Assembly (NCBI GenBank): GCA_004431415.1
Contig: QPMI01000560.1
Location: 248,001 to 312,000, forward strand
Direction: 5' to 3'
DNA length: 64,000 nt
DNA from: Cyanophora paradoxa CCMP329
Taxonomy: Eukaryota > Plantae > Glaucophyta
This document shows positions 24,847-55,667 of this stretch, one piece after another. The notes under the pieces are model-generated. The model was not told the DNA's origin and made no database searches. It saw nothing but the letters and a program-made list of their open reading frames with translations. Position 1 is the stretch's first letter. The number at the start of each line of letters is the position of its first letter. The position numbers and the translations under genes were made by a program.

Positions 24847-27458
24847 ATGGGGAAAGCGAAGGAGCAGAAGGGAAAGGTGCGCGCGGCGCGTACGCGCGTG
24901 GAGGCCCCTAGACGAACGTGGCGACGGCGCAGGCGCAAGCGGCGCAGGCGGCGCAGGCGGCGCAGGCGGCGGGCGAGGAGAAGCTGGAGAACTCGGATGA
25001 GTTTCTAGACGTTGGTGCGTAGCAGTTGTGAGTGTGCCTGGTGCGCCCTGACCGCACCGAACCCACGCGATGCGTTTCTTCACGTAGCGTACGCGTACCT
25101 GGTGCTTTATTCCCGCCCCTCCTCGTGCCGACTCTCGATGGCACTCACCCCGACGATGGCACTCGTAGGTGGAGTTCGAGGCAACAAGGAACCCAAGTTT
25201 GCACAAGGTTCGAAGATCTAGAAGAAGCACTGCAGCTGGGTTATTCTGCTCACGGCGGCAGCAGATCATCAAAGTTCTGGCGAAAGAGAGTGGACTCATT
25301 GGCGCTCTCGTTGCGCCCGCTGTCCTCCTGTTGATTCGGAAGCCCATGTCCTGATTTCTGACTCGCATGGACCTGCAGGCAATGCGGAGGAACTACACGC
25401 ATTCGCCTCAGCTGCAACGCATCTTTGTGCAGGCGTTGAAGGAATTTCACAAGAGGTACAATGGAGACGACATAGTCTTCAGACTCATCGTAGACTCGGC
25501 GATGGACAGACTGCGGGCCACAAGCTCGGCTGCCGCCCGGAACCAGATTCTGCTCAGCGGCCTGTTCGCGCAGCTCAAGCCCACGAAGCCGAAAACTGCG
25601 CCGCAGCCTGCGCACCCCGCTCAACCAAGAGCGCCCCGCCAGGCGCAGCGCCCAGCCCTGCAGCAGGCACCCCGCAGGCAATACAAACCGGCGCCCGCCC
25701 CCTCCCCCGCGTTCCGCCCGGCTTTGCACACGGCGGCGGCCGCGGCGGTCGTCTCGGGATCTGCGGCCAGCCGGGGCGCGTCCGACTGGATGGAGCGGGA
25801 GAGCGTGGCCGGCAGCTCGGCGAGCGCCAGCAGCGGCGGCTCCTCCAGCCTCGTGACATCGCGCTCCGACGGCGACGGATGGGAGGTCGCCCGCCCGCCG
25901 CCCCCGCGCCCGCTTGCGCCGCGCCCGACCCGCCGCGCAGGTCGTGGCCCGCAAGGTCCCCGCGCCGAAGAAGGCGGCGGCCGGCGGCAAGGGCGGGAGG
26001 CGCGGGAGGGGCGGCTCGCAGTACCTGCGGCAGCCCTGGGAAGAGGACGAGGAGGAGGAGGCCGAGGAGGCGACCGTCGAGTTCGAGGCCAACCCGTGCG
26101 CGCGCCGCCCGCGCCCGCTGTGCCCGCCGAACGTCTCACCGCCTCGAAGGCTGCTGCGGCCGCCGGGGATGTCGGACGCGGAGTACAACCAGCGCGTGCG
26201 GGTGATGATGGCGCGGAGCCGGCTGGAGGAGGAGGCGCGCCTGCGCCGCGAGGAGGAGAGCATGAAGCAGGAGTGGGAGGCCTACTACCAGGCCCTCGAG
26301 GAGAGGTGCAGGAGGCTTACGTCCAACCCCGCGCCGCGCCGCGCCCCGCCCCGCCCCGCGTCTCCCCTGAGCTCCGCGGCAGCAGCCGGGGGCAGGAGGG
26401 GGCGTGGGAGGGCGCCGGGGGCGGCTGGTCGTGGGACTTGGAGGAGGTGCCGGACCACGAGCTCCAGGCCGCCGTCGTCCGCCTCCTCCCGCCCACCCCC
26501 CCCCCCCCCCCCCCCCCCCCTCGCTCCTCTCCCGCCCCCAACCTCGCCGCAGGCCGCCGCAAGGCAGGAGGGGGCCGGCCAGTGGCGCGCCGCCCCCGCC
26601 GCCGACGCCGCCGAAGGAGACGACGCGCTCCTGTGCGCCCCTCGCCCGCCGTGCGCGCCCTTGACCGCTCGCATCTCATGCGGCGCGCAGTCGTGAGCTC
26701 CTCAACGCGGACGCGCCTCACGCGCCGCTCTCGCACGCGCCAGCGCCGGCTGCGGTCGCCCCGCCGCACGATCCCGCCCAGGCCTTCCTGAGCCCGGCGT
26801 CGGCGGAGGAGGCGGAGGAGGCGGAGCTGCGGCGGGCGCTGGAGGAGAGCCTGCAGGAGGCCCGCCGCGAGGAGGCCCGCCGCGCCCGCATGGCCGAGCT
26901 CTTCGGCGAGGCGGCCTTTGGCCCCGCCCCGGCCCCGGCCCCGGCCCCGGCCCTTGCCCCTCCCCAGCCCGTCCCCGCCCAAGCTCCCGCCCCGCTCCCC
27001 CCCTCCCATGCTGGATGGGCCGACCAAGCGGCCCACGCAGCTTACAACCCCTATCCACCCGTCGCCGCCCCTGCATCCCACTACATCCCTCCCGCACCCG
27101 CTACTTCCGCCTCCCTCCCTTCTCCCGCCCCCGCTACCCCCTCCTGGACGCACGCACCAGCGCCCCCGACTCCCACCGGCCCATCTACGCCCCCTGTCTA
27201 CACCAGTGCGTTTTGATTCGGGTCTTGCTTTGCTGTCGCGGCGTTGGAATGACTCCCTCCGCTGCTGCAGATTGGAGTCCTGCGGCGCCGCCCACGGCGC
27301 CGACAACGGCGTGGACGCCCGGCGGCCCGGGCCCGGGGCCCCCGAGCCCTCGGAGTGCGACGCCGACGTTTGCAGCGCCCGCGGCGCCACCCGCGCCTCC
27401 GGCGGCGGAGGGGGACGACATGGACCTCGACGAACTCACCCGCCTCTGCCTCTCGTAG
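24847..27458 (+). CDS. Uncharacterised UIM-containing protein, paralogue A
   Basis: Spliced N-terminal domain (AYAYLVEF...GLIGA...PQLQRIFVQALKEF), UIM-like EEAELRRALEESLQE at about 26806-26859, Pro-rich tail, ends DLDELTRLCLS*. Confidence 0.7.
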
Positions 27459-33213: not shown

Positions 33214-35881
33214 TCAGGGGGCCGGGGACGCGAAGTCGGAGTCGAAGGAGAAGATGCGCTGCGGGCGGGTCGCGTCAGCGGGCGGCGCGGGGAAGGAAGG
33301 GGCGGAGGGGGGCGGGCGGGGGTCACCTCGAAGTCGATGGCCTCGAGCTTGCCGGCGCCAGCGGCCTCGGGCTCCCCGGGCTCGCCCCTTGAGCCGGCCC
33401 GGCGCCCCCCCGGGGTCGCCCCCAGCAGGAGGTCCACCCGCTCGCAGCAGTCGCCCCCCGGGGGGCCCAGGAACGAGGCCAGCACGCCCTCCTGCGCCGC
33501 CCGGCCGGTGAGGCGAGCGAGCGCGGCGCTGGTGCGGCGGGCGGGGCGGGGCGGGAGGGCGCACGGCGGCGAGGAAGTCGTCGAGGGGTCCCCGGGGGTG
33601 ACGCCCGCGGGAGGGCGGCGCGCGGTCGGGCCGCCGCCGCAGCGCCGCCGCGACGCGCTCCAGGAGGGCCCCGGGCTGCTGCCCTCTGCCCCCGCCCCTC
33701 AGGCAGCTCCACCCCGCCCCCGCCTCCGGATCCGGGTCGGGGTCGGGCAGGGCGCCCGGCTCCTCGGGGGGCCCCGGCCCCGCGACCGGCTCGGGGGTCG
33801 CGGCGTGGGAGCCGCTGGCGGGGCCGGAGTGGGAAGCGCGGGGGGGCGGGGCGCGGGCCGGGGCCGGGGCGGAGGCGGTGCGGGCGAGCTGGTGCTGGTG
33901 GGGGAGGAGGAGGAGCTCCATGCGGGAGGCGGCGTCGAGGCCCGAGGGGGAGGGCAGCGGGTCGGAGAGGGCCCGCGGCAGGTGCGACACGGGCGCCGTG
34001 AAGGGCGAGACGAGCGCCCCGGGGGCCCCGCCGGGGGGGCGCGGCGGGCCCCGAGAGGACGGTGGGGAGGGGCGGCGTGAGGGCCGGCGTCTCCGGCGAG
34101 GGCGGCGAGTCGGCGTCCTGCGGCCCCGCCGAGGCCGAGGCGCACGCGGCGCGCTGCGCGGCCGCCCGCGCCGCCCGCGCCGCCGCCGCCCGCTCCGAGG
34201 CCGAGACCTGCGGGGGCCAGGGCCGTTAGCGGACGCCGAGAAGGGCGGAGCGGGGCGGGGAGGGGCGGGGCGGGGCGGACGAGGCGCTGGCAGAGGTCGT
34301 TGAAGGCGGCGATCTGCTCGCGGATGCGCAGCCAAAGGCGGTACGTCAGGAAGAAGGCCCCGTTCTGCTGCTCCAGCTTCTCCCACACTGCGCCCGCCCG
34401 CCCTCGCCGCTCAGGGCAGTGTTCAGCGGCGCGGAGCGGGCGGCGGGCGGGCGGACCGAGCTCGGTGACGGGGGGGTCGACGCGGTGGGCGGCGGCGAGG
34501 TGCGCGGCGGCCTCCTCGCGGGTCATGTAGCGCTGGAGGCAACCCTCGAGCAGCGTCTGCACCATCTGCACCTCCTCGATCGCCAGCCGCCCGGGCTCCG
34601 ACGGCACCGCCGGCGGCGCGCTGCTCGCCGCCGGCGCTGGTGCAGCCAGCGCCGGCGCGGGGAACTCCGGCGTGGGCGAGCGCTGCAGGGCGGCCGAGCG
34701 CCTGCTGGGCGAGGAGGAGGAGGAGGGCGGGACGGGGCTGAAGGCGGCGGCGGCGGGGCGAAGCGGGGCGAGGAGGGCCGCGGGGCGGGCGGGGCGGGCG
34801 GCGGGGCGGCGCTCTGCTGGGCGCGGCGGGCGATGATGGCGGCGGCTGCGACGGCGGCGGCCTCCGCGAAGGCCGGAGGCTGCGGCGAGAGGGAGCTCTC
34901 CCGCGAGCGGCCCGCCTTCGCCGGACCCCGCCCCTTCCGCTGCTGCTTCCCGCTCGCCTGCCGCGCCGGGGCGCCCTCGGGCGGCCACGCCTCCGGCGGC
35001 TGCGCGGCGAGCTCGGGGGTGCGCGGGGCGGGCGGCTCGGGCGTGCGGAGCGCCGGCGAGTCGGGCGTGCCGGCCTCGTCGCCGGCCTCAAGCGGCGCCG
35101 GCCGCGCGCGCTTCGTCGGCGCCGGCGGCGCCGGCGGCTCCGGCGTCGTCGGGGCCGGCCGCGGCGCCGGCGAGCCCGGCAGCGCCGGCGAGGGGGCCCC
35201 GGGCGAGTCCCGCGCGCATCGCCCCGAGGCGAGCGCGGCGGCGACTGCGGCCGCGCCGCCGTCGCCGCCGGCCGCCGCGCGGATGAGAGCCTTGCGCGAG
35301 ATCACGACCACCGAGGCGGGGGCGCCGGGCGCCGCAGCCGGCGGCGGCGCCGGGGACGGGGACGGGAGGAACGGGGCCGAGTTGGGCGGCACGTTGACGG
35401 AGAGCGGGAGGGGGAACACGGTCGGGAGAGCGCTGCCCGCATCTGTTGGCCCGTAGAACGGCCGCTGCGAGGGGCGCTGCGGGCAGAAGGGGTTCTGAGG
35501 CTCTGTGCGGGGCGGTTCAAAATGCCACTGCTCGGCCGGATCCCGGCCGGCAGGCGGGGCGGGCGCGGGCTGCGGAACGCTCGGAAGGAAGGTCGGCTGG
35601 ATGTCCGGCTGGTTTGGAGGCGGTGCGGCGGCCGCGGCCGGCGCGGGCGACGAAGCTCCGGCGGCCTCCTGGTTTGCGATGGGGACGAGGTGGCCCGCGC
35701 CGACAATCAGGAACTTCCGGTCGCCGATGCTGATCATGCGCGCCTGGGGGACCGTCCGCTTCTTCTTCTGGGCCGGCCCGTCCGCCAGGGGATCGCGCGA
35801 GTCATGGCGCCCGCCAGCCCGCCCCGCGTGAGGGTCAGGGAAATGATGGCCCTGTGCTGTTGCGGCATAGGGCCTCTCCAT
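33214..35881 (-). CDS. Protein with an A_thal_3526 (TIGR01589, plant protein 1589) domain
   Basis: VQTLLEGCLQRYMTREE...VDPPVTEL|VWEKLEQQNGAFFLTY...REQIAAFN matches the domain pattern; last exon RIFSFDSDFASPAP*. Confidence 0.78.
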
Positions 35882-36319
35882 GGCGCTAGTCCAGGCGAGC
35901 TATCGCCTTTTCATATTCCGCCCGTGCGCGCTGGAAACGACGCCCACGTCGCAGGAGGTCGGAAGCACTCCGAATGTGTCGCTGGTCAAGTTTAATGCAC
36001 AGGTTGCTGTGCTGACCAAGCTGACAAGGGTTGTGAGTTGGAAGCAATTCCGCGGTTAGGGGCACTGGGGCTTGCAGAAGAACGAGAATGCTCCCAGCAA
36101 CGTGCCCGCGAGGTGAAATCGCTCGCGGGACTCCGGTTTTCGCGCGACTCGAAGCGGGACGCCTGGGGTACGCGATCTATTCGAAGTCGACGGCGGGCGG
36201 CGTCCGACGAGCTTCCCGTCCACCGAGAATCCATTAGGTTCGTCGCGAATGACGCGAGGCTCGGCGCGCGTACAACTTTGCTGAGGTCCAGCGCGGCCCG
36301 CAGCCCGACGCGGCCGGCC

Positions 36320-36537
36320 ATGCCGCCTAAGAGCGAGGAGAGGAAGAATATAGATCGGCTCATCACCTACGCAGCACGCTGCGCTCGTGACGCCGTCTAC
36401 TACGGTAAGAAGCTTTGCCGCGGCGCGCGCGAACTGGCATCGACGCATTCCGTGCGCCAGGTGTGCCAGTCGTAGCGATCCTGCTCATCCTGGTGTCGAA
36501 GCCACGCGCGAGGCTGTCGGCGCTCCTTTCGCCTTGA
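36320..36537 (+). CDS. TOM7: Tom7-like mitochondrial outer-membrane translocase subunit (53 aa; exons 36320-36404 and 36461-36537)
   Basis: Removing the 56-nt GT-AG intron gives MPPKSEERKNIDRLITYAARCARDAVYYGVPVVAILLILVSKPRARLSALLSP: YG-x-P motif, one transmembrane segment and the terminal LLSP typical of Tom7. Confidence 0.72.
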
Positions 36538-36572
36538 GATTGCCAGGATACGTAGGAGAGGCGAAGCCGGCA

Positions 36573-39500
36573 ATGGACGCGCTCGCGGCAGAAGTGGAAG
36601 CGGCGGTGACCGCGTTCTTCGACCCGGCGCGGGCGAGCCAGCGGGTGGAGGCGGAGCGCCACTTGGTCGCGTTTCGGCAGCGGTCCGACGCGCTGGCCGT
36701 CGCCGCCGCCCTTCTTGAGCGCGCCTCGAATCCCTTCGTGCTCTGGTACAGCGCAAGCGTCGTCGAACACACGCTTCGGGCCGGCGTCTGGACGTCGTTC
36801 CCGGATGACATCCGCCTCGCGACCCGCTCCGCGCTCACGAAGCTCGTCGGCCAAGTGCGCACGCGCACCGCCCGTCCCCCGCGCGGGGCGCGGAAGGTCG
36901 ATGCATGCGACGCGCACGCGCCCGCAGGCGTCGCTGCCGGGCTACGTCTCGAACAAGCTGTCGACCGTCTACGTGCAGCTCGCGCAGTCCGAGTGGCCGA
37001 ACACGGACCTCGTTGCGAACGTCATGGGCGCCATGCAGGACGCGCGGTCGCGCAGCTTCGGCCTGGCGCTGCTGAAGCTCGCGGCGGAGGAGTTCCACAG
37101 CACGCGGGAGGACGCCACGAGCGAGCGCAAGGCGGAGCTGCGCGCCGGCTTCGCCGCGCACGTCCCGCGCCTGCTGGACGCCCTCGGCGCCCTCCTCTCC
37201 GCCGGCTTCCCCGCCGCCGCCGCCGGCGACCGCGAGGCCCTCTCCGCGTGCGAGGGCGCCGTCGGTGCGCCCCCGCCCCGCGCGCCCCCGCCCGCGCAGC
37301 CGCCGCCGACCCCGCCCCGCGCGCAGCGGCGATGCAGCAGATGGTCGGCTGGCTGGGGGCCCCCAACGCGGCGGCGCACCTCACGGGGGCGCACCTCGCG
37401 GCGCTGGCGGCGCCCGTGGCGGCGGCGGCGCGGGCGCCCGGCGGCGGGCCCGGCGACGCGCTCGCTGCAGAGTGCCTGGCGTGCGCCAGCGAGGCGCTCT
37501 CGCGGCCGTACCCCTCGCCGCAGCCGGTGGCGGAGCTGCTGACGGCGCTGCTGCCGCTGGCGTGCGAGGCGTGCTCGCTGCTGGCGGCGCAGGGGCGGCA
37601 GGCGCTGGCGGGGGCGGACGCGCGGCTGCTGGTGCAGCTGCTGGCGCTGGTGCAGGCGCTGGTCTCGCACCACGCGGGGCGGCTGCTGGGGAGCCCGGCG
37701 CAGCTGGACGGCCTGCTGACGGCCTTCTTCGGGCTGACGCAGGCGCTGCCCTCCCCCGAGCTCTTCGTCGTCGCCCTCGAGGCCTGGGCCTCCCTCCTCG
37801 AGCTCCTCGCCGCCTCCCTCCACGACCCCGCCGCCCCCCGCTCCCCCTCCGCCGCCGCCGCCGCCGCCCAGTGCGCCGCCCCCCCGGCCCCGCCCCCGCC
37901 CGGAGCTGAGTCGGCGCAGCTTCCGGGGCGGGCTGCTGGCGGTGGCGGGCGGGGCGCTGGAGCGGGTGCAGTGGGCGAGCAACGGGCGCACGCTGCGCAT
38001 GCTCGACGACACCTTCGACGACTCGGACAGCGGCTCCGAGGAGGGCGAGGCCGGCCCCGCATCCTCCCCTACCGCCGCCGCCGCCGCCGCCGCCCGCCAC
38101 CGCCGCCAGGAGCGCAACGCCAAAGCGGCGGCCGCCGCCGCCGCGGCAGCCGCGCGGGAGCAGGGGCAGGGCGAGGGCGAGGAGGGCCCCGAGCCGGGCG
38201 AGGGCGAAGAGGAGGAGGAGGAGGAGGATGAGACCGGCGCGGCCGCCCACGAGGCGCGCCCCGCCCGCCCCCCCGCCCTAGCAGACGAAGGGCGCTGAAG
38301 AGGGGCGCAGACGGACGTGGGGCGGTACCAGGCGGCCGGCTGCGAGGTCCTCGCCCGCGTCGCCGACCTCTTCCCCGAGGGTCCGCCCCGCCCCCGCCCG
38401 CTTGAGCGCCCGCCCCGCCCACGCCCGACCGCCCGCCCGCTCCGCAGAGGTCTTCCACATGGCGGTGCCGGCCCCGCCTCACCATTCCCCATTCCGCCTC
38501 GCCCCGCCCCGCCTGACGTCGCGGGCAGCACGAGGCGCTGGGGAGGCACGCGGGGGCGCTCGCCGACCCCGCCGCCACCGCCGACTCCGTCGAGGCCGGT
38601 GCGCGCGGCAGAGTGGCAGAGTTCGCTCTGCTCTGCTCTGCTCCGCGGACGTCTCACCGGCGGGGGCGGCAGCGCGGGACGGGGCGCTGCTGGTGCGGCT
38701 GCTGGGGCGCCTCGCGGGGGCCCACTTCCCCGCCGAGCCGGCCCGCCACGCCCCGGCCGCCCTCCGCCTCGCCCGCGACGCCGCCGGCCTCGCCGCCCTC
38801 GCCGCCCACCCGCTCCTCGGGGGCCCCGCGCCGCGCCCCACGCCCCCCTTCGTCCTCCACGACCTCGCCGCCGCATGCCTCGAGGCCCTCGCTGGCCTCG
38901 CCCCCTGGGCCGCCGCCGCCCGCCGCGCCGCCCCGGAGGCCCCCGACGCGGCCGCGCTCGCGGGGCCGGCCGCCGAGCTCGCCGCCGCCCTGCTCCTCGC
39001 CTCCCCGGCCCCGCCCGAGCGCCTCCGCGCCGCCGCCGCGCGCCTCCTGCGGGCCCTCGCCCCTGCCTCCCGCTCCCGCCGGCCCCCGGCTCGGCCCCGT
39101 GCAAGCGCTGCTCGCCGCCGCGCCGTCGCTGCTGCAGGGCCTGCCCCTCCCCGCCGCCTCCGCGACCCTCGCCGCCCTCGCCGCCGCCCTCGCCGCCTCG
39201 CCGGCGGTGGACGCGGGGGCCCTGGCGGCGCTGCTGGAGCCGGCGACGGCGCCTCTGGCGGCGGCGGCGGCGCTGCCGGGCCTCGCCGAGCAGCGCCTCT
39301 TCCTGCGCCCCGACGTCGCCGCCGCCGTCGCCCGCTGCCCCCGCCTCCTCCGCCGCGCCGCCCTCGCCCTCCGCCCCGCCCCGCCCCGCGCCCGCGCTGC
39401 CCTCGCCGCCGCCCTCGGCCCCGCCCTGGGGCCGGCCCTCGCCCTGGCGCGCCTGTACCTCCCCGCGGGGCGGACGACCCGGCGGCCGCCGCGCCGGCGG

Positions 39501-40691
39501 CCGCCCTCGCCTCCTTCCTCTCGGCCGCGCTGGGCGCCCTCAAGGCCTCCCTCGGGCCGCCCAGCTCGGGCAGGCCCTGGGGCCCTCCTGGAGCCCTTCC
39601 CGGGCCCCGCCCTCCGCGCCGCCGCCGCCGCCGCCCGCCCCGCCCCGCTCGCCCTCCTCGCCCGCCTCGTCTCCCTCTGGCGCGCCGCGGCGGGCGACCC
39701 GGCGGCGGCGCTGGAGCCGTTCCTGCGGGAGGCGGCTGGGCGGGTGCTGGGGACCTCCTCCCGCCCCTCCTCGCCTCGCGCGCGCCCCCGCAGCAGCACG
39801 CCCGCCACCACGGGCGCCGGCGCGCGTCAGAGGGGGAGGAGGATGGGGACCCGACGGCGCTGCGGCGCGCCTGCTTCGCCTTCCTCGACGCCCTCCTCCG
39901 CTCCCACTGGCGCATGCTCGCCCCGCCCGCCGCCCCCTCCCCCTCGCCGCCGCCTCCGCCGCCCTCGCCGCCGCCGCGGGGGCGCCCCAGCCGGCCGCCC
40001 CCGCCGCCGCCCCGCGGGGGACCCGAGCGGGGCCCTCCTGCTCGCCGCCCTCGACGCCCTCCGCCAGGGCGTCGCGTACCCCGAGGACCACGAGGCGCCC
40101 CGTACCCCCCTCGCTTGCGCCCGGGCCTGGGCTGACCGGGCGGCAGGTGTGCCGGATCTGCTGCGGGGCGCTGGAGCGGCTGCTGGGGCGGAACCCGGCG
40201 GCGGCGCGCTGCGTGGCGGGGCCCTTCGGGGCGGAGCGGGGCCTGCAGCGCGGCCTCTGCGGGGCCCTCCTCGCCGCCCTCGCCGAGCGCTCGCACGAGG
40301 CGCTGCGGGAGGAGCTCACGGCCGCCCTCCTCGCCGCCGCCGCCGCCGACTGGGGCGCCTTCTACGGCCAGGCGCGCAGCCCCCTCCTCTCTTTCTTTCT
40401 TGTCTCTTACTCGGCTACAGGCGCTGCCCGAGTTCCTGGAGGGGCGGACGCGGCCCGGGGCCGAGGGGCAGCCGCCGGGGCTCGCCCCCGCCGAGGCGGC
40501 CGCCCTCCTCGCCCGCTTCGGGCGCGAGACGGTGCGTTTGTCCCCCCCCCCCCTCCTCCCCCCTCCCCCTCCTTTTCCTAACCCCCGCTAAGGAGGGCGG
40601 GGCGTTCGGGCGGCGGGTGGGCGAGCTGGCACACGACGTGGCGTTCCTCCGCAGGCGCCACGCCGCCGCCCGCGACGCCCAGCTCGTCTAG
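36573..40691 (+). CDS. XPO6: Exportin-6-like karyopherin-beta, multi-exon
   Basis: N-terminal importin-beta domain; LPGYVSNKL..V..EWP; GLALLKLAAEEF..REDAT.ERKAELR; NGRTLRMLDD; C-terminal LAERSHEALREEL...DWGAFYGQ|ALPEFL and LAHDVAFLR resemble XPO6-specific blocks. Several small indels in C/G runs. Confidence 0.75.
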
Positions 40692-40787
40692 CGAGGGCCC
40701 GCCCCGCCCCCGCCCCGCCCCGCCCCGCCCCCGCGCTTGCTGTTACCACAGTGGCGGGCCGCGCACTCGCATCGAACAGTCGAACAG

Positions 40788-41099
40788 AGCAGCTTCGGCG
40801 GCAGCGACCGCCAGGAGAGCAGCGATCACGAAACGGGCAGCGCGCGAGGCAGCGAGCTCGAGGAATTCGAGGACAACGAGAGCGAGAGTGAGTAGGGCAG
40901 CTGCAGAGAGCACTACAGCAGCGAGGATGCATATAGTAGCGAGAGCGATGGCAGCGAGTGCGCGGAGGGCAGCTGCTCGAGCTCTGTTGTTTCGCACCGT
41001 GGCACGTTTTCGGCCACATCGAAATCTGGGTGCTGCGCCCCCGGCCCGGGCTTGGCGGCCCTCGAGGCAGCTGCAGCTCGCCTGGCCAGACGGAATTGA
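40788..41099 (+). pseudogene. Degenerate Ser/Glu/Gly-rich coding-like fragment
   Basis: Reads SSFGGSDRQESSDHE...ESESE*GSC...; internal TAG at 40893-40895 and no start codon. Confidence 0.3.
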
Positions 41100-41684
41100 C
41101 GTTGCTGCAAAATATACCGTGGAATAGACACACGATTTTGCTGGGTCTAGATCTACCGTAACCCTTTCATCGGGTTTCTTGAAAAATTCCTGATTTACAA
41201 TCTGCACAACAGGGTCATGATCACGAATAGCCTAACCTAATTGAAAACTTGAAAAAACTTCGATCGGAAGAGACGCAAAAATTAAAAATCCGATAATCCT
41301 CGAATGGGATGTGTACACACGCGAAAAAGAGTCATCGGCGTCGCAAACTAGTCGCTGATCATGAAGCCTAAGGGCTGCCAAGCCTGACTCATGGAAGTCA
41401 CTGAGTTCACGGTTCAACGGTTGAAAAAAGTACCGCGCTGCCCAGTGTCGCGCTAGTTACGGAGCCATGGAGCCTCGGGCAGCAGGACACCTGCTACTAG
41501 GCAAAATTGACTGTACAAGAAAATACGCGGCTATAGCTAGCTGCAGCCGCTGAGCCGCTGAGCCTCGGAGCTAGAGAGTGAACTCGCAATCATGGAGTCA
41601 CTGATGAATTCGAAGTGGCACGCGAAGAAGGAAACATCGCAATAGATACTCGAATTCTACGTGTACATCCGATGATAGATATCA

Positions 41685-43984: not shown

Positions 43985-44455
43985 ATGGTGCGAGGCTGGC
44001 ACCCGGCGGAGGGGAAGCTGGACCTGAGAGGAGAGGGCCTAACGGAGTGGCCGGCGGCGGAGATCGCGCGGGCGGGCCCTGCGAACATCCGGGTCCTGCT
44101 CCTCGACGACAACAGGCTGACGAGCATCCCAGGATCGGAGCTCGCAAGGCTGACGAACCTGCGGACTCTGAATGTCAACAGTAATCGGCTGGCGACGCTG
44201 CCGCCGGAACTTGGCTGCCTCTCGACCCTGGAGAAGCTGATCCTGGACAGCAACCGGCTGACGGCCCTGCCGCCGGAGATCGGGCGTCTTTCGAACCTGC
44301 AGTACCTGTGGGCGACATACAACCTGCTGACGGAGCTGCCGCTGGAGATGGCACTGGGCCAGCTGACAGCTTTGCGGGAGCTGAACGTGAGCGGCAACCC
44401 CCTGGCGGCGCTGCCGCCGGAGATCGAGCGCCTGCCGAACCTGCGGTTGCTGTAG
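43985..44455 (+). CDS. Intronless leucine-rich repeat protein (156 aa)
   Basis: About five 23-25 aa repeats of the form LxxLxLxxNxLxxLPxEIGxL. Confidence 0.85.
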   Translation: MVRGWHPAEGKLDLRGEGLTEWPAAEIARAGPANIRVLLLDDNRLTSIPGSELARLTNLRTLNVNSNRLATLPPELGCLSTLEKLILDSNRLTALPPEIGRLSNLQYLWATYNLLTELPLEMALGQLTALRELNVSGNPLAALPPEIERLPNLRLL

Positions 44456-45362
44456 CTCCAGTCGCCCTCGAGCTAGCACCTCCGCTCCATTCACGCCCCC
44501 GCCCCCGCCGTGCGCCTCTCCCCGCCGGGGCCCTCCCGTCCCATGCCCCACGACCCCCCGCAGCGCGCCCGCATGCCCCTGCGGCCCTCGCCCGCGAGCG
44601 CGCCGCGCTGAGCCCGGCTCATCGCCCCGCCGCGCTCGACGCGCCCGCTCGCCGCCGACGCGACCCTCCGCCATCGAGGTCCTCAGCTCTTTTCCCGCCC
44701 GGCCCCCGCCCGGCCCCTCACGCTGCCGCAGCTGCAGCTCGCCCCGACGTCGACCCTCGTCGTCCTCTCCAGCGCGGGCCGGCTGCGCCCGGTGCAAGCC
44801 CCGCCACGCGGCCAGGACATTCGCCCTTCACAATGCGGCGGCTGAGGCGGCGGTGCACCGTGGCCCGGGGGCCGCGGCGTGGCGCTGGGTGGCCGCCCGC
44901 CGCGGCCCCCTCCTCGAGCTCCCCGCTCCGGCCCGCGCTCATGACGGCCCCTCGAGCCCCTCTCAGCTAGATCTGCCCGCGGCCCCCTCCCCTCCGAGCC
45001 GTCGAGCGTCCCCTGTACCCCTCTATCGTGATCGCGTTCTCTCCACAGCACCCTATAGTTGTGCACCCCCCTGAGCACCCCCGGGCTGCTCGCCTCGAGC
45101 TTTCTAGCCTCCTGAATTCAAAGTGCCCGATGTAGCGTGCCGCGCCCCAAGTCAAAAAGCGCCCTCCACACCCCGGCCGTGAGCTCCTCGAACCTCGAGC
45201 CTCGGAGCGCCCTCTAAGCTTAGCTGCGCATGCCCGGCCCTCTCTGCAGCTGGCGAAGAGGCGTGATCGCGAGGCGGTGCGAGTGAGCCTCAGTGGCGGC
45301 GCACTGGCCACCGGCCCTCAGCGCACTGTGGCGCCATGAATGAAAGGGGGTTGGGAGTGTGA

Positions 45363-47010
45363 TCATGAGCTACTGGAGGGGGCTCGGCCGCTGCCGCTGC
45401 CGCCGCCGCTGCCGCCGCTGCCGCCGCTGCCGCCGCTGCCGCCGCCGCTGCTGCCGCCGCTGCTGCCGCCGGCCCGCGGAGTGCTCGGTGGCTTGAAGCC
45501 AAGACCTAGGATGTAGATCTCCTCACTCTCCTGCGGGCGCCAGCGATAGAATTCAGAGGGCGAAGCGCGGGGCGGGGTCCGAGGGCAGCGGGGCACCTGC
45601 CGGCTCGCGGCGGGCTTGGCCCACTGTACCTGTTGCGAGCGGGGGCACAGCTACGGTCATGGACCGGCGCTGCAGTGCTAGCTTGCGGGGGTACGAAGCA
45701 AAGCTCGAGGGGGGAATTCAGGTACCCGGTTGAAGTGCGGGTCGAGGAGCGCCTTGAACTCGTTCTCCGTACCGCCCCGCGTGGCCTTCGCGACGAAGGC
45801 CCCCCCGCGCCTGAGCACCTGCTGCGCCAGCTGCGGCGGGGCTCGGCCGGCGGGCGAGGGAGGCCGGGGGCGGGGGCGGGCGCGGGAGGGGTACCGCCCA
45901 GGCGTCCTCGCAGAGGCGCATGACGCGGAGGTGGTCCGTGCCGTGGTCCCCCGTGAAGGGCGGCGCCATGTCGCTGCGCTCCGCTCAGGCGCGTCCCTCA
46001 GATGACTCTGAGCGGCCGGAGCGGGGGCAGGGCGGGGCGCGCCTGACGACGGCGTCAGCGCCGGCGGGCCCGACGACCTCGCGCAGGCGGCGCGCGGCCG
46101 CCTCCTCGCGCATGTCCAGCTGCAGTACCGTCGCCCCGCCCACGTCATCCATTGCTGCGCATGCCGCCGCCCGGTCGGCACAGCGCGCGGGATGCGCGGC
46201 GCGGCGGCGACACCGTCGAGGCGGCGCGCGCACGGTTCATGTCGGCAGCGACGACCCTCCCGCCTCCCGGCGCACCGGCCCGCACGCGCTGCACCAGGAT
46301 CTGCACGGGCGATCGCACGTACGCGTGGCGCCGGCGAGGCGAGACCGGGATGGCCTGAACCCAGGTCAGGCCCGGCGCGCACCTCTGTCCATCCCCCGGG
46401 AGCTGCGCCACTGCGAAGATTCAGAGCCCCAGGACGGGAAGCGAGAATTCGAAGATGAGCTCACAGGTCAACAGCGACAGCGCCGGGCTTCAGAAACTTG
46501 AACTTGTCATCGAGCTGCGCGAGCTTGAAGGCCGACCGCGCTCCTACGAGAGGCCGGCTCAGCGTAGACGTCGACTCACGCATGCGCGGGTCTCGGGGCA
46601 CGTACGGAGGCCCTGCGCTTCGCGCTCGCGCACGAAGATATCCTTCGACTGCCGCCGTGCCCAAGATGCGGATCTGAGGCGCAATCGTTATCAGCGCCTG
46701 GGTGCACCCGCGATGACCTCTTCCCGGCCGCAGCGCACGATCCGGACTTGCTGCTGAGCGCGGCAGCACCGCTCGATATCGGCCGCCGCAACGCCGCCGC
46801 GCACAGTCGGAGCGCCAGCGCGAGATGCCAGTCGAGCGCGAGATGCCTCGCCCCGCGCGTGTACCGGTCGTAGAGCGCGAGATGCCAGTCGAGCTCGCTT
46901 CGCGCGTGTACCCGGGCAAAGCAAGCTTGAAGCTTGAAGCTTCGTTCAGCTAACAGCAGCCATCGGCCTTTGGCCGCAGCCACGCACGTCCTGGAGATTG
47001 AACTGCGCAT
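45363..47010 (-). CDS. MRM2: FtsJ/RrmJ rRNA 2'-O-methyltransferase (MRM2/RlmE-like), multi-exon; start uncertain
   Basis: WARRQSKDIFV, R|ARSAFKL, VDL|GAAPGGW, SDMAP, FVAK and KPAASRQ|ESEEIY give the K-D-K-E tetrad. Confidence 0.82.
45386..45470. repeat. GCC/GCT microsatellite encoding a Gly/Ser tail of MRM2
   Basis: Run of gccgccgct-type units inside the last exon. Confidence 0.85.
46817..46915. repeat. Local imperfect tandem duplication
   Basis: gcgcgagatgccagtcgagc twice, gcgcgagatgcc three times and cgcgcgtgtacc twice. Confidence 0.7.
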
Positions 47011-47116
47011 ACCGCAGCCTGCAACCTCCAGCTCGCCCCAGAGTCCAAGTTCGATAGAGGCGGCGTCCGGGCGCTTCAGCACGACGTACCGAGGTGGCCT
47101 CGACGTTTAGCTAAGG

Positions 47117-48578
47117 ATGGAGGAGCAGGCGAGGAGGATCGCGCGCCTGCGGAAGCTGGCGACGGAGCCCGAGGCTGTCCGGCTCGTGGACTTGATCGAG
47201 AACCACAACTTCAGCGTGAACCGCAGCGTGGAGATGCGGCTGCTCGACGACGAGAGCGAAAGCGACGAGGAGGAGGGCGAGGCGCAGTCGGCGGCCTCCT
47301 CCAGCAAGAGCGAGGCGAGGCGGCGCCCGAGCGGGGTGCCGGCGCTGGCGGCGCTCGAGGCCGACGGGGAGGGCAAGCTGGGGCACGAGCAGCACGTGCT
47401 GGGCGCCACCCTCAAGCGCGACCTCGGCGCCCGCATCAAGCGCCTCGCCCAGGCGCGCCGCCGCCGAGCGCGAGCGCAAGGCCCCGCCGCCGCCCCATTG
47501 AGCCGCGCCGCCCGCAGAAGGACTTCGACGCGCGGGCGGCGGAGATGGTGCAGCGGATGCTGGGCGAGCGGGCCGAGCGGCCGCCGCTGCTCTCGGCCCG
47601 GCAGGAGCTGCAGACGCGGGCCCAGTGGCGCATGCCGCGGGAGCGCGCGGGGGAGGAGGGCCGGCCCGGGCGCATCTTCGTCGCGGGCAAGGGGTACGTG
47701 GTGCTGGAGGGCGAGGCGGGGGTGCAGCGGGACCCCTCGGAGCGCCCCGCCGAGCTCCCGGGGGCGGCCTCCTTCCGGGAGCCCAAGCGCGGCGCCGCCG
47801 CCCGCGCCGCCGCCGAGGCCGAGGAGGAGGCGCGCCGCGCCGCCGCCGCCTACCGGGCCGCCCACCCCCGGAGTGGCGCCTCGACGGCAAGGGCAACCTC
47901 CTGAACCCGCACGGCCCGCCCCGCCCCGCCTCGCCCCGCCCGCCCTGCGCTCCCCGGGCGGCGCCGCCTGACGGGCCCCGCAGACGAGTACGACCTGCTG
48001 AAGCTCGACGCGTACGCCTCGGGCAAGGCCTCGGGGGGTACGCGGCGCTGTGCCCCCGCCCCGTCCCGCCCCGTCTCCCAGCGCCGAGGGCGGCCGCCTC
48101 GCGCGCGGATGCGCAGGGCGCTCCTCACGGCGCGGTGGCAGCGGATGCGGGGCGGGCCCGAGCCGGCGGCGCCGGCGGCCGCCAGCTGGAAGGACTCGCC
48201 CCGCCTGCCGCCCGCCGCCCGCCACACGTACCGCAAGGTGAGGGGGCGGGCGAGGGGGCCGCCCCGGGGCCCTGCCGCTAGGCAGCCGACGCGGGGGTGG
48301 CAGTACCTGTCGGCGCTGAACGCGGGGGACGACGACGACGACGACAGCGACCTCGACCTGCCCGGCCGCCCCGGCCAGAAGGAGGAGGAGGAGGAGGAGG
48401 GGGGGAGGGCGGGGCGGGGGCGGTCGAGGGCGCGGGGGCGGGTCAGCAGCAGCAGCAGCAGGCGCTGCTCCTGACGGCCCCCTCGGCGCCCTCGGCTGAG
48501 GAGAGGGAGGCCCCGGTGGCCGGGGCGGCCCCCAGCACCAGCGGCAGCGGCGAGGGCGGCGCCGTGGGCGGCGGCTGA
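47117..48578 (+). CDS. Hypothetical protein, multi-exon
   Basis: Exon chain MEEQARRIARLRKL...RLAQ|KDFDARAAEMVQRML...|DEYDLLKLDAY, with acidic tracts. Confidence 0.55.
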
Positions 48579-49391
48579 GCGAGCGAGCGCTCGGACCGCC
48601 CGGCGCCCACTCATGCCGCCCCCAGCGCCCCCCGGCGCTCGAGGCGGCCGCCCGGCAGACGAACCACCCTTCGACCCGCCGCAGCTGGCGCCGCGCGCGC
48701 CCCGCCTGCTCACGGGGCCGAGGGCCTTCAACCGGGCACGGGTCTCGGCGCTCATCACGAGCCTTGGAGGCTCGCGATCGAGGCACTGCGGCACCCGCGG
48801 CCGCTCGCGCAGCCGACGCTTTCGCTTATTTCAGGAGTAGATGAATTCATCTCGGCGAGATTTAATTACACGAAAGAAACTTTGAAAGGCTGAGAAAAGG
48901 AATCGAAACATCATGTGTCTGCTGCTGTCATACTCATGATTATCATGAGTGACACTGTGACATGCCATGATGGCCATGGGTCGGTATTGCTCAGCGGCTG
49001 TTAACGTTAGAAATACGTATACTGAAACTGCGATTGACTAGATCGAAAGTCTTGGAGGTGCACTAGTACTGCTTTGAAACGTTCATATAATACCATTAAG
49101 ATATACTTAAGAAACTTCGGGCTTTCAGTCCACCCTACGGTATCGATTGTCTGAATTCGAATTTGAATCGGATGACCTGCCTAAGACTGTCGACGCTACG
49201 ATCGGTTGATCCTGCGTAGCCTAGTTTACGTAGGGCACTACGTATACTCTCTCTATTACTCTGACGTGTCTAGATCTAGATCTACACTGCTTGAAATGCA
49301 ACTATCGCTACGGTTCGAGTACGAGGGACGGCGCGGAGCCAAGTGCGGGCCCCGGTCGCGGGCCCGGCGGCCGGGGCGAGCCGCGGCTGCT

Positions 49392-50928
49392 CTAGGTCTC
49401 GAGGAGGGTGTGGCGGCCGGAGGGCCAGGTCTGGTCGAGGACGGGGGCGCAGGCGGCGCGGACGGCGGAGACGAGGCCCGGGTCGGCCGGCCCGCGGAGC
49501 ATCTGGGCGACGGCGTTCTCGACCTGCGCGGCGCTGGCGAGGCCGACGAAGGTCGAGGCGACGCGCTCGTCGAGGTGCAGCGAGTACTGCAGCGCCACGT
49601 CCGCGATGTCCGCGCCCCGCGCCCTGCACAGCGCCGCCCCCCGCCGCGCCGCCTCGCGCGCCGCCTTGCTCGCCGGGTGCCAGTCGGGGGGCCCCGCCTC
49701 GGTGAGGAGGCCCATGGCGAGGGGCGAGGCGTTGAAGACGCCGAGGCCCCGCCCGACGAGGTACGGCATCTTGCCCGCCAGCGTCGTGTCCAGCAGCGTG
49801 TAGTGGCAGTAGGAGAGGACGACGTCGACCACGTCCGCCGCCCCGCCCTGCTCCAGGATCTCCTGCGCGCGCGCCTCCCCGTCAGAAAAGCGGTCCCAGG
49901 TCGAGATCTCGATGCGGGCGCGCCTCGTAGATCTCGAGGGGCAGGCCGGTGATGCCGACGTGGCGGACGATGCCGCGCTCCTTGAGCTTGCGGAGCGCCG
50001 GGAGCGTCTCCCGCACGATGTACTCCGCGCTCGGCGCGAACTCCACGTCGTGGCAGTGCAGCACGTCGATGTAGTCCGTCCTCAGCCGCTGCGCGCCCGC
50101 CCCGCGCGAGGCGCGTCGGCAAGAGAACGCAAGCCCGGCGGCTCGAGCTCGAGCTCGAGCTTGAGCGGGGCGGACCTGGAGGGACTCGCGGACGGACTCG
50201 GTGATGCGCTTCGCGCTGAAGTCGAAGTCGGTCGCCCCGTAGCGCCCGCACTTCGTCGCGAGGACGTAGTCGCCGCGGGGCACGCGCGCCTCCTCCAGCG
50301 CCTCCCCCAGCAGCGCCTCCGACTTGGTCAGGCCGTCTGCCCCGAGCGCGCCCGCTTCAGCGCGCGCGCCCGCACGATCCGCGCGCCACGCTAGGGGCGG
50401 AGGCGGTCTAGATCGCTGGCGGGTCCTCAAGCGTGCGGTTGCGTAATCGCCAAGTTATGCGCACGAGCTCGAGCTCGGGGGGAAAGATCACTCACAGAAG
50501 GGGCTAGTGTCAAACACGTTGATGCCGAGCTTCAGGGCGGTGTGCACGGCCGCAATGCCATCCTGCGCGTGCGCGGGGGGTTCGTGTGAGTGATGATGTT
50601 TCGCAAAATAATGCGCGTTAGGGTTCAATAGCGCTCGCTAGAATCTGCAAATTGAGGCGTTGCGCAGCTTCGCGCGGCCGCGTGCCGCGTGCGCGGCGGG
50701 CGGATCGAACCGGCACCGGATCGCCTATGGCAACCGCGCCGCGCCGCGCAACGCGTCCCAGCGCAACGCACGGGAAAGACTATAGCTAGCACGAGCACTG
50801 GCGCTAGGCGCTATGCGTGCTCAGCCGACCTGGCGCGTTATAGGCGCGAAGACGCCGCCGAGTGGAGAAGCACCGAACCCCACGGGCGACACCAGAAGGC
50901 CCGTTGTGCCGAGCTGACGGCGCTCCAT
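49392..50928 (-). CDS. L-galactose dehydrogenase-like aldo-keto reductase, multi-exon
   Basis: MERRQLGTTGLLVSPVGFGASPLGGVF, GINVFDTSPF|YG, ATKCGRY, LHCHDVEF, VGITGLPL, VLSYCHY and NASPLAMGLLTEAGPPDWHPA. Confidence 0.88.
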
Positions 50929-51077
50929 CGCTACAGTGCTGCAGCTGCTGGCAGACGAGACGGCTGTACCCTAGCTCAAGCCCAAGCCCAAGCCGCCTCC
51001 GGCTTGTCTGCGTCAGCATTCAAGTTCGCAGGCCTTCGACGGAGCGCGCAGGCGCGTAGGCGGTGTAGCTAGCGAAG
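50929..51077. promoter_or_regulatory. Compact bidirectional promoter between L-GalDH and DPAGT1
   Basis: 149 nt between the divergent ATGs; contains aagcccaagcccaagcc (AGCCCA, site-II-like). Confidence 0.5.
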
Positions 51078-52717
51078 ATGGGGCGACTGACCCCGGCCTT
51101 CGTCTTCCTGCTGGCTATCCCGCTGTCGGCCCTCGGGCTGCTCGTGCCGCGCGTCGAGAGCCAGCAGACGCAGCGCCAGATTCTGTACTGCTTCGTAGTC
51201 TCGATCCTTGCGTTCTTCGGGACGCTCCGGCTCATCCCAGTCATCGCCGTCTACACCAAGAAGGCGGGCCTGGCGGGCCGGGACATCAACAAGGCGGCTC
51301 CGAAGAAGAGCGACGACGCCGCGTCGAGCGATGGACCCGCCGAGGACGCGAGGATGTGCGCGCCTCGCAAGCGCGAGGCTCGCTCCGGCCCGCGCGAGCT
51401 GACGCGCGGGCGTCCAGACCCGAGAGCCTCGGCCTCGTGTGCGCGACGGTCTACATCGTCGCCACGATCGTGCTGCAGCTCTTCATGGTCATCCCCGAGA
51501 GCGCGGTCCGCACCGCGTCGCCCCGCCGCCCCGCCCCGCGCGCCCCGAGCGCCCCGCGCCGAGCCCGCGCGGCGCAGCTGGACGAGTACAACGCGGGGCT
51601 GACGTCGGTGCTGCTGATGACGCTGCTGGGGTTCGCGGACGACGTGCTGGACCTGCCGTGGCGCTACAAGATCATCCTCCCCGCCTTCGCGACGCTGCCG
51701 CTGCTGGTCACGTACTCGGGGTCGACGACGGTGCTGGTGCCGAGGCCGCTGCACCCGTTCCTGGGCGCGTCGCTCGCGCTGGGCGTGCTCTACAAGGTCT
51801 ACATGGGCTTCCTCGCCATCTTCTGCAACCAGTCCATCAACATCTACGCCGGCATCAACGGCCCGCCGCCCCGCGCTCCCGCCCCCGCCCCGCCCCCCCC
51901 GCCCCCGCCCCGGCGCTGACGGGCGGCGGCAGGCCTGGAGGCGGGCCAGTCGTACATCATCGGCTGCGCCGTCCTCATCCACAACCTCCTCAACCTCGAC
52001 TCCGAGTTCTTCTTCCAGGTACCCCCCGCCCCCCGCCCGGCCCCGTGCCCCCTCCTGACCTTGTGCCCCCGCAGCACCTCTTCTCGATCTTCCTAATCCT
52101 GCCGTTCATCGCGGTGACGCTGGGGCTGCTCTACTACAACTGGTACCCCTCGGCGGTCTTCGTGGGGGACACCTTCTGCTACTTCGCCGGCATCGCCCTC
52201 GCCGTCGTCGGCATCCTCGCCCACTTCTCCGAGGCCCGCCCCCTTCGGCCCCTCGTCCCTCCCGCCCGCCCGGCGCGGCCCCGGCCTCGCTCACAGAGAT
52301 CCCCCGCGCAGCTCCTCGCCTTCTTCTTCCTCCCCCAGGTTTGCGGGGCGGTGGGAGGAGCGGCTCGCCCCGCGCCCCGCCTGACGCCCCGCCCCACAGA
52401 TCCTCAACTTCCTCTACTCCCTGCCCCAGCTCTTCAAGCTCGTCCCCTGCCCCCGCCACAGGGTCCCCAAGTGCGGCCCGCGACCCCCTTTCCCCCGCCC
52501 CGCCCTCCCCGACGCGCCGGGGGGCGCCGGCAGGCTGAACCCGACGACGGGGAAGCTGGAGAGCAGCAAGAACTACACGCTGCTGAACGCGTTCCTGGGG
52601 ACCTTCGGGCCGATGACGGAGCGCAACCTCTGCGTCGCGCTGCTCGTCTTCCAGGCGCTCTGCTGCGCCGGCGCCCTCCTCGCCAAGCACTACGTCGTCA
52701 GCGCCCTCTACGCCTAG
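51078..52717 (+). CDS. DPAGT1: UDP-GlcNAc:dolichyl-phosphate GlcNAc-1-phosphate transferase (ALG7), multi-exon
   Basis: [41 protein letters not shown]|[24 protein letters not shown] and PCPRHRVP. Confidence 0.95.
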
Positions 52718-52969
52718 CTAGCCACAGCACAGCAGCCCACAGGATCGCCGCAATTTCAATGCAGGCGCACAGAAGCGCGTGCAACAGCTAGCCGGGGCCG
52801 CTCGCGGGCCCGGCACGCCCCGAGCTCATGCGCAAGCGTTTAAGGAACGCATCAGAGTCGCAATAGCTGCAGTGTGCAAGCTTGCAGTTCGTCTAAGAGG
52901 GGGGGGGGTCGAGCCGGGGCGGGGTACCAGTTCCGGGGCCTTCATCGGCAGGCACAAGCAGTTCGTCCG

Positions 52970-55667
52970 ATGTCTCTGTCCCTCGTTCGTCAGCTCGCCC
53001 CGCGGGCGTCGTCGTCGCTCCGTGCCACGGTGCGCGCTCCCGGCACAGATTACGAATCCACGGCCCGACGCTGCGGGGCGGGGCGTCGTCGTTTCCTCGC
53101 GCAGCTTGTGCCGGCGCGGTGCTACAATGCCCCCTCGGTGAGCCCTCGCGCATCAGAAGCGCCGACGGGCGCCCGATATCATGCGCGCGCCGACTTGCGC
53201 CGGCTGACCTATTTTGTCTTCGCACCCGTTAGAGCCTCAAGGCGAAGCTGAAGGAGATCATTCCGATCAAGGCCGACGAGGTCAAGACGATCAAGACTAA
53301 GTTCGGCGATGAGGTGCTCGACAAGTGCACGATCGAGCAGGTCCGTTCCATTTTGATGACCCCCCATAGTCATATGGCGTGCGCTGGCTCCAGCGCAAGT
53401 GCAGTCGCCCCTCCCGCAGCTGCCTCCGCTGCCGCTTCGCCGTCGCGGTGGCCTTTCGTACCGAGCGCTGGATCGGTGCTTAGAACACATATAGAGAGCC
53501 ACGGGGATGCTTTGAATTGGATTAAAAGAGATCGGACGTGCCCGCGGCCCCGGGCCTTGCCGATTTTGCCTCCTGTCCTTGTCCCTTACTCTTTTTTTCC
53601 TTAGCCTTGGCCTTTACTCCGATTGCTAGCTTCTTCCAACTCTATCTTCTTCTGGTTTTCTTAATCTGCCCAGCCTAGCTCGGCCCATGCCTTGACGCTT
53701 GTCCTCTGCGCAGACCTACGGTGGCGCGCGCTCCGTCAAGGTCCGGCCCTCCCGCTGCGCGCCACTTCTTAGCTATCCTTATGCCTGCGCGCAGTGCATG
53801 ATCTGGGAGACCTCTCTCCTCGACGCCGATGAGGTGCGCCCCGTCCCACGATCACCAGCTGGTGCTCGGGGGGGGCGCCTGACGCCGCTGGGCGCGGCAG
53901 GGCATCCGCTTCCGCGGCAAGACGATCCCGGAGGTGCAGGCGGCGCTCCCGAAGGCGCCGGGCGGCCAGGAGCCGCTGCCGGAGGCGCTCTGGTGGTTCC
54001 TCCTCACGGGCGAGGTCCCCACCAAGGAGCAGACCGCCGAGGCGAGCGAGCGCGCTACCGCCGACCGTCCGCCGCCTCGTCTGAGGCTGCGCGGGGCAGG
54101 TGACGGCGGAGTGGCACGCGCGCTCGAAACTGCCGGCGCACGTGCCGGCGCTGCTTAAGAGCCTGCCGGAGGACATGCACCCGATGACCAAGTTCAGCAT
54201 CGGCATCATGGCCCTCCAGCCCCAGTCCGTCTTCGCCTCCAAGTACCAGGTCCGCCCGTTCCCCCGCCCGTTCCCCCGTTCGCCTTGCCCGCCGGAGCTG
54301 AGCGGCGGGGGCGGGGGCGCAGCACGGGATGAAAAAGGGCGAGTACTGGGACGCCACCTACGAGGACGCCATGACCCTCCTCGGCCAGATCACCGGCGTG
54401 CGCCCACCGCTCGGCCCCCGACCCGCCGGCCAGCGGCGCCCCCAGACCGAGCGCGCTCGGGCGACAGGTTGCGGCGCACATCTACCGGAACCAGTACCAC
54501 GGGGGGAACATCATCCCGGCCGACCCGAAGCTGGACTGGTCCGCCAACTTCGCGCACATGCTCGGCTTCGACAACAAGACCTTCCACGACCTCATGCGCC
54601 TCTACCTCGTCCGCGCCTCTCGCGTACCCCCGCGCGGCCCGCCGCCCACGCGCCCCGGCAGGTCATCCACTCGGACCATGAGGGCGGCAACGTCTCGGCG
54701 CACACCGTCCACCTGTCCGCCCCCCGCCCTGCCCGCGCCCCGCCGCCGCCACCGCCCCCCGCCGGCCGCCGACGCGCCGGCAGGGTCGGCTCGGCCCTCT
54801 CGGACCCGTACCTCTCCGTCTCGGCCGGCATGAAGTGCGCCCGCCCGCCCCGCCTGCGCGCGCACCCGGCGGGGCCCGGCTCACGCGGCGGCGCAGCGGC
54901 CTTGCGGGCCCGCTGCACGGCCTCGCGAACCAGGAGGTCCTCAACCACCTCATCTCCATCCAGCAGCAGCTCGGCGGCGAGGTCCGCCCCGCCGCCCCCG
55001 CCCCCGCCCCCGCGCTCCCCCCGCCTTCGGCCCTTTCTCAGCGGCGAGCTGCGCGCAGGAGCCGACGGCTGAGCGCCTCACGAAGCTCTGCTGGGACCAG
55101 CTCCAGTCGGGCCGCGTGATCCCGGGCTACGGCCACGCCGTGCTGCGCAAGACGGACCCGCGCTACACGTGCCAGCGCGAGTTCGCGCTGAAGCACCTCC
55201 CGAACGACCCGCTCTTCAAGCTCTGCTCGACGATGTACGAGGTCGTCCCGAAGGTCCTCACCGAGCAGGGCAAGGTCAAGAACCCGTGGCCCAACGTCGA
55301 CGCCCACAGTCCGCCCCGCCCGCCCGCCCGCCCGCCGCCCGCCTCCCGCACCGACACGCGCGGGGGCGCGCGCGCGCAGGCGGCGTGCTCCTCGTCCACT
55401 ACGGGCTGACGCACCAGAACTACTACACGGTGCTCTTCGGCGTCTCCCGCGCCATCGGCACCCTCGCCCAGCTCGTCTGGGACCGCGCCCTTGGCATGCC
55501 CCTTGAGCGCCCCAAGTCGGTCCGCCCGCCCCGCCCCCCGCCCCGCCCCGCGCCCGCCCCGAGCGCCCCGAGCTGCCCCGCGCGTGCTGTTGTTGACTTG
55601 GGATGGCGCGCAGGTCACGACGGAGTGGGTCAAGAAGTGGCTGGCCGGCCACGGCAAGCACCTGTGA
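52970..55667 (+). CDS. CS: Mitochondrial citrate synthase, 14 exons
   Basis: Full splice reconstruction: presequence, [54 protein letters not shown] and ERPKS. Confidence 0.97.

Follow-up and report, generated by a model that had tools for sequence, protein, structure and literature searches.

The locus raised the question whether two proteins of the glaucophyte Cyanophora paradoxa, a putative small protein resembling the mitochondrial Tom7 and the large transport receptor exportin-6 (XPO6), are encoded by one and the same nuclear mRNA. The window, i.e. the whole analysed stretch of 64,000 nucleotides of contig QPMI01000560.1, to which all positions refer, contains on its forward strand an ATG at 36320 (context gccATGc), which opens the 85-nt first coding part of a Tom7-like open reading frame (ORF1). 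This part is followed by a GT-AG intron of 56 nt in phase 1 (36405-36460, GTAAGA...GCCAG) and by a second coding part of 77 nt (36461-36537), which encodes a hydrophobic segment with the motif G-V-P and a basic tail ending in LLSP. Together, both parts yield 53 codons plus a TGA, which ends at 36537. After a spacer of 35 nt (36538-36572), the ATG of XPO6 (ORF2) is located at 36573 on the same strand (context gcaATGg). The two ORFs lie in different frames and have separate start and stop codons, and stops are present upstream in the frame of XPO6.

The coordinates, the splice, the 35-nt gap and both start contexts had been given in a preliminary description of this DNA and proved to be exact on re-reading; the sequence likewise confirmed that no ATG occurs in any frame between the two starts. 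According to the same description, other co-oriented neighbours are at least 230 nt apart, and the two further same-strand gaps measured in the window amount to about 233 and 252 nt, with two ATGs in each. Compared with these two gaps, the Tom7-XPO6 pair does stand out. The Tom7-like gene had also been described as hidden, but it is already annotated as tig00021127_g18781.t1 (EukProt EP00741_Cyanophora_paradoxa_P019456), an unnamed model of 80 amino acids. This model contains the intron at 36405-36460 and an upstream intron at 36238-36303, and adds 27 N-terminal residues by an exon at 36088-36101, which is followed by an intron extending to 36186. Its start at 36088 was rejected, since RNA contigs run unspliced into the first intron of the model, to 36172-36180.

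Two other readings of the frames were discarded. A frame of 614 codons from a GTG at 36387 crosses spliced introns, and a Tom7-XPO6 fusion or a read-through of the stop codon is contradicted by the differing frames and by a TAG at 36551-36553.

The exportin-6 gene and its surroundings

The assignment of ORF2 to a full-length exportin-6, as named in the preliminary description, is well supported by sequence comparison. Its second exon (36928-37264) contains a Pfam Xpo1 domain (PF08389, E 5.8e-7, for 36931-37260), and 40 relatives of this exon were found among 1.84 billion proteins. Many of them, from insects, a mollusc, a scorpion and Balamuthia, bear the name exportin-6, whilst no relative is named as a different exportin; the loci of these relatives carry the domain TPR_XPO6_C. 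Furthermore, a profile built from 18 long XPO6 homologs is collinear with the region 36591-40374, covering positions 10 to 1017 of 1077. As this mapping begins at position 10, at the N-terminus of the family, the ATG at 36573 is the natural start of XPO6.

The coding start (36573-36854) forms one exon with the second Tom7-like part and the spacer, corresponds to profile positions 10-97 and shows a weak IBN_N match (E 0.097); a homolog search with this first XPO6 exon found none. The third exon (37327-37825) is covered by the profile and lies on an RNA contig shared with the earlier exons, and joining of the initial three exons gives a continuous frame free of stops. For the remaining gene (37826-40691, TAG at 40691) the exon map is incomplete, with collinearity up to profile position 1017. 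In comparison to the exportin-6 family (IBN_N, Xpo1 PF08389, TPR_XPO6_C PF26714), the family-named homologs of the second exon are all exportin-6. In contrast, the identity to homologs is 27-43% in the best exon alone, PF26714 gave no match on the separate XPO6 exons, and the assembly has single-base gaps which break the frame. In the RNA contigs, one extra C or G is present at each of 39059, 39094, 39466, 39553, 39578 and 39748, in short runs of C or G. These six bases are probably missing from the assembly due to deletion errors of long reads.

Neither of the two protein searches returned an XPO6 protein of Cyanophora. Protein searches and two metagenome scans yielded no glaucophyte homolog of either protein, but length limits and introns leave these blanks with little weight. 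Three distant exportin-6 genes, represented by eight loci, showed no Tom7-like ORF in their upstream flanks of 57-641 nt. Weak tblastn matches upstream of XPO6 on four metagenome contigs (L001-L004) were dismissed as chance, being located on the opposite strand and containing a stop. On marine and freshwater metagenome contigs (L001-L007), there are exportin-6 genes of protists that contain few introns, and relatives were also found in amoebozoans and in Ancoracysta; the family is therefore wider than animals. Beyond the stop codon of XPO6, RNA contigs extend for another 400-500 nt (40767-41200), which might belong either to an extended 3' UTR or to a different transcript.

Upstream of the pair, a divergent gene is located on the minus strand (33699-35881, likely ATG at 35881; with its RNA contigs 33699-36155). 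Its product contains an A_thal_3526 domain of plant type (Pfam, E 1.6e-11). In four runs, the RNA contigs of this gene extend up to 36138-36155, and those of the Tom7-XPO6 pair begin near 36172-36180. The contig ends thus lie head to head at a distance of 17-40 nt, and such contigs show neither the strand nor the true ends of a transcript.

Housekeeping genes in the regions 1-30000 and 45000-58500 were read by eye. They comprise putative genes for an inositol-phosphate kinase-like protein (1671, minus strand), a NUBPL/Ind1-like protein (1962), a TPR protein (5264), an RBBP6/DWNN-like protein (7762), an SNAPC1-like protein (about 20665), a prephenate dehydratase with a Phe-type transit peptide (27692), an RlmE-like methyltransferase (about 46700, minus strand), an aldo-keto reductase (50928, minus strand), a DPAGT1-like protein (51078), a citrate synthase (52970) and an ABC ATPase (58025, minus strand). 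Two genes (24847-27458 and 58414-60453) possess, as judged by eye, similar proline-rich ends, acidic tails and a closing motif resembling LDxLxxLCL, and they are possibly paralogs. An intronless ORF of 156 amino acids at 43985-44452 contains leucine-rich repeats (Pfam LRR_4 and LRR_8) and appears by eye to have a GC3 below that of its neighbours.

Spliced RNA across both ORFs and its possible origins

Four sequencing runs marked as 'RNA?' contain 0.70-0.73 of the words, and they can be regarded as derived from RNA because their contigs lack five GT-AG introns of the downstream gene. In three of them (X17, X19 and X20), a single contig each covers 36460-36854, 36928-37263 and 37326-37825, i.e. 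the second Tom7-like exon, the spacer and three exons of XPO6, and lacks two GT-AG introns. In the fourth run (X18), there is a hole at the locus and the contig is absent. X19 and X20 represent one sample, and the evidence consists of three RNA runs from two samples and two studies. The assembled spacer is also backed by DNA, since 16 DNA runs contain 0.99 of the words, although they may stem from the source strain; a misassembly of the spacer was rejected on this basis.

The genome match of the three contigs stops at 36460, whose G is shared with 36404, and upstream of this position the contigs contain a further 166 (X17), 158 (X19) and 102 letters (X20). These upstream pieces were placed by depth arithmetic and not read as joints, 15 of the 99 contig joints being listed. 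Only a model in which both introns (36405-36460 and 36238-36303) are removed fits the depth bins, whereas the unspliced and the one-intron models fail. In the bin 36073-36263, for example, the two-intron model predicted 6.36 and 14.19, and 6.36 and 14.2 were observed. The arithmetic suggests a spliced RNA that begins with exon A (36172-36237; fit in X17 and X19, donor AG/GTTCGT), whose 5' limit is approximate as the contigs end near 36172 and 36180. It would continue with exon B (36304-36404), which comprises 16 nt of leader and the first Tom7-like coding part and is also in agreement with the length of the X20 contig, and then with exon C (36461-36854) and onward. The 5'-UTR intron of 66 nt at 36238-36303 also occurs as an intron in the public model. 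The splice at 36405-36460, which had been read from the sequence in the preliminary description, is thereby supported by the RNA contigs, the depth bins and the public model.

The sole ATG upstream of the Tom7-like start is located at 36249 within the intron 36238-36303 and would open an ORF of 11 codons if the intron were retained. Since this intron is removed together with its ATG, the Tom7 AUG is the first and the XPO6 AUG the second in the spliced RNA, whose leader has a length of about 75-85 nt. The residual depth over the bin of the Tom7-like intron (0.5-0.7; 0.45-0.6 left over by the two-intron model) equals the level in X18, which has no such contig, and therefore no XPO6 leader containing this intron was seen. 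One end of the X20 contig coincides exactly with the 3' boundary of 36238-36303, which hints at a branch between spliced and intron-retaining leaders.

A bicistronic mRNA had been proposed for this gene pair. As the spliced RNA contigs run unbroken through the second Tom7-like exon, the spacer and XPO6, they support a shared mRNA, but contigs assembled from short reads by de Bruijn graphs prove neither a single molecule nor its strand or ends, and they may fuse overlapping transcripts or drop minor forms. It is likely that a shared mRNA is the source of both proteins, be it by leaky scanning or by reinitiation. A bicistronic mRNA of the green-algal type that is read by leaky scanning is, on balance, the probable explanation. 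In such a mechanism, a single promoter near 36150-36180, facing away from the neighbouring A_thal_3526 gene, would give rise to one spliced mRNA consisting of the leader of about 75-85 nt, the 53-codon Tom7-like ORF, the 35-nt spacer and the ORF of exportin-6. Removal of the intron 36238-36303 would eliminate the only upstream AUG, and most scanning ribosomes would initiate at the Tom7 AUG (-3 G, +4 C). A minority would bypass it and, after 194 nt without an AUG, initiate at XPO6 (-3 G, +4 G). Much of a small subunit of the TOM complex and little of a large transport receptor would be formed in this way. We infer the single molecule, the lack of a poly(A) site behind ORF1, the translation of both ORFs and the leaky scanning from these observations.

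The signs of leaky scanning that had been listed before, the gap without ATG and the C instead of a G at +4 of the upstream start, are real but weak. At the given composition, an ATG-free stretch of 194 nt is expected with a probability of 0.09 to 0.14, and its occurrence is within chance and not significant alone. Both starts possess a G at -3 and differ at +4 only, and the context of the Tom7-like start is intermediate and not weak. Of 16 further starts that were read by hand, 9 possess a G at +4, and this sample is too small for a genome consensus. No poly(A)-like motifs were detected after the Tom7-like ORF, which says little because the 3' region of XPO6 is also devoid of them. A scan for sigma-70 promoters found none at the locus and, being based on a bacterial model, is irrelevant to a eukaryote.

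Alternatively, two overlapping mRNAs with a single ORF each might have been fused by the assembler, with the Tom7-like mRNA ending in the first XPO6 exon and the XPO6 mRNA starting in the second Tom7-like exon. Contigs cannot show one molecule, and dense genes with many overlapping UTRs were reported for the genome of C. paradoxa, although the example given is on opposite strands (Price et al. 2019, PMC6704402). The earlier statement that the gap leaves no room for a 3' UTR, a poly(A) site and a promoter is somewhat weakened by these overlapping UTRs. The contig bearing the Tom7-like ORF has 1.0 to 1.5 times the depth of the best downstream XPO6 contig, but this excess permits at most about two-fold additional Tom7-like RNA and is a poor measure, confounded by GC content (0.73 versus 0.86). 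Moreover, as no intron-containing leader was seen, the XPO6 promoter would have to be located within a coding exon of 77 nt in a gene that is itself transcribed. Two overlapping mRNAs are thus considered unlikely.

One promoter with two splice forms is a further explanation, in which the main form would make the Tom7-like protein and a minor form would skip exon B (36304-36404), so that the AUG of XPO6 becomes the first. No ATG is present in exon A or in exon C upstream of 36573, the joining of these two exons (36237 to 36461) creates none, and a minor path could have been dropped by the assemblers or be missing from the 15 of 99 joints that are listed. However, all three contigs pass through exon B, and the main form would have about 4 kb of untranslated, spliced RNA behind its stop codon. 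Transcripts of this kind are normally a target of decay. Exon skipping is therefore quite improbable.

If both ORFs share one mRNA, XPO6 could also be translated by reinitiation after termination of the Tom7-like ORF. The short spacer of 35 nt and a Tom7-like start that is not clearly weak would be compatible with this, but the length of 53 codons of ORF1 disfavours it, as reinitiation declines after ORFs of more than about 30-40 codons. The spacer does not form an unusual fold (z 0.65-0.72), which also speaks against reinitiation and led to the rejection of an IRES-like fold in this region. Mutations in green algae spoke against reinitiation and led to its rejection there (PMC11291117), and it is very doubtful for this locus.

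Identity of the first reading frame

ORF1 is, judged from its predicted protein, very likely a Tom7. The best three clusters in the ESM Atlas were all Tom7 (scores 0.85-0.86; 186-191 of 256 features), the family hits agreed in 10 of 10 cases, and nothing usable remained when the Tom7 clusters were left out. Scores below 0.9 are leads and not proof, and Tom7 had been named before this test. The peptide of 53 amino acids contains one hydrophobic segment (hydropathy 2.57 over residues 26-40) with Pro31, which by position alone, without an alignment, is near the conserved Pro29 of human Tom7 (PMC7522991). Like the Tom7 family (PF08038), ORF1 encodes about 55 amino acids with a basic N-terminal part, a hydrophobic segment with a proline and a short C-terminal tail, but it differs from the family by the lack of a Pfam or PDB sequence match.

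The spliced peptide was examined by means of the public protein record, and for the other spliced models each exon was searched separately. By the Pfam test, ORF1 is not a member of PF08038: neither of the two short exons, nor the public protein, nor its last 53 residues matched the Tom7 profile, and the filters of HMMER drop weak matches. The call made in the preliminary description thus failed at the profile, whereas the features of the ESM Atlas point to Tom7 alone. A search of PDB sequences with the peptide found nothing, and homolog searches, one of them with the unspliced frame of 51 codons, returned only the Cyanophora model. An AlphaFold model from the single sequence, with three fold searches, gave one plain straight helix and generic coiled-coil matches only; a model of this type cannot test the kink. 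The GC3 of ORF1 (0.71-0.79) is below that of the XPO6 exons.

It is highly improbable that ORF1 is something other than Tom7, namely an upstream ORF in the XPO6 leader with a regulatory role or of chance origin: the missing Pfam, PDB-sequence and fold matches, the Atlas scores below 0.9, the low GC3 and the lack of homologs would agree with it, but it is opposed by the uniform Tom7 clusters with their shared features for a protein named in advance, by the length, the single hydrophobic segment and the position of Pro31 as in human Tom7, and by an intron that preserves the frame.

The locus therefore supplies a candidate for a glaucophyte Tom7 which is missed by Pfam and whose public model carries an unsupported N-terminal extension. 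It is also a warning that, in the genome of C. paradoxa, small mitochondrial genes can be mis-modelled if they are located in the leader of a larger one.

Comparison with polycistronic transcripts of other algae

Green algae are known to possess nuclear bicistronic mRNAs such as TOM22-SDHAF3 (Gallaher et al. 2021, PMC7896298; Dueñas et al., PMC11291117), and leaky scanning was demonstrated there by mutation, also at the TOM22 locus (PMC11291117). The green-algal loci have an ORF1 with a median length of 291-357 nt, a spacer of 40-183 nt (median 40 nt in Auxenochlorella) and a leader of 54-83 nt (PMC11291117). With an ORF1 of 162 nt, a spacer of 35 nt and a leader of about 80 nt, the geometry of the Cyanophora locus fits these loci. 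It also shares with them the short mitochondrial ORF1, the short spacer without AUG, the long ORF2 in another frame, the short leader and cis-splicing, and no sign of trans-splicing was observed. In contrast, the host is a glaucophyte and the pair is Tom7-XPO6. In addition, a single promoter, a single poly(A) site and both proteins were demonstrated in green algae, whereas the present evidence consists of the sequence and short-read contigs. The locus thus resembles a green-algal bicistronic gene and is a candidate member of this group.

Polycistronic transcripts were also demonstrated by Iso-Seq in Cyanidiophyceae and were interpreted there as an adaptation (Cho et al. 2023, PMC9812998). Common to both are the gene-dense genome of an archaeplastid and, if the shared mRNA of the Cyanophora locus is correct, several ORFs of the same strand on one nuclear mRNA, but Cyanidiophyceae are intron-poor extremophiles, whereas Cyanophora is rich in introns and not an extremophile. 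With ordinary upstream ORFs, the locus has in common that a small ORF precedes the main ORF and would be passed by leaky scanning; it is distinguished from them by a spliced ORF1 that appears to encode a conserved functional protein. Glaucophytes and Cyanophora are absent from the main texts of PMC7896298, PMC11291117 and PMC9812998, and Tom7 from those of the two green-algal studies. A literature search, which covered few subscription papers, found no report of a bicistronic nuclear mRNA in glaucophytes.

It is conceivable, though rather unlikely, that the glaucophyte genome regularly employs leaky scanning of bicistronic nuclear mRNAs whose ORF1 is small and often mitochondrial. The habit would then be common to green and red algae as well as glaucophytes and may date back to the archaeplastid ancestor, and a 5'-UTR intron with an upstream AUG could tune the amounts of both proteins by its retention. 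If the proposed bicistronic mRNA is correct, nuclear bicistronic expression would be extended to the glaucophytes as a third algal lineage, and it would become testable whether it arose by shared ancestry or repeatedly in compact genomes.
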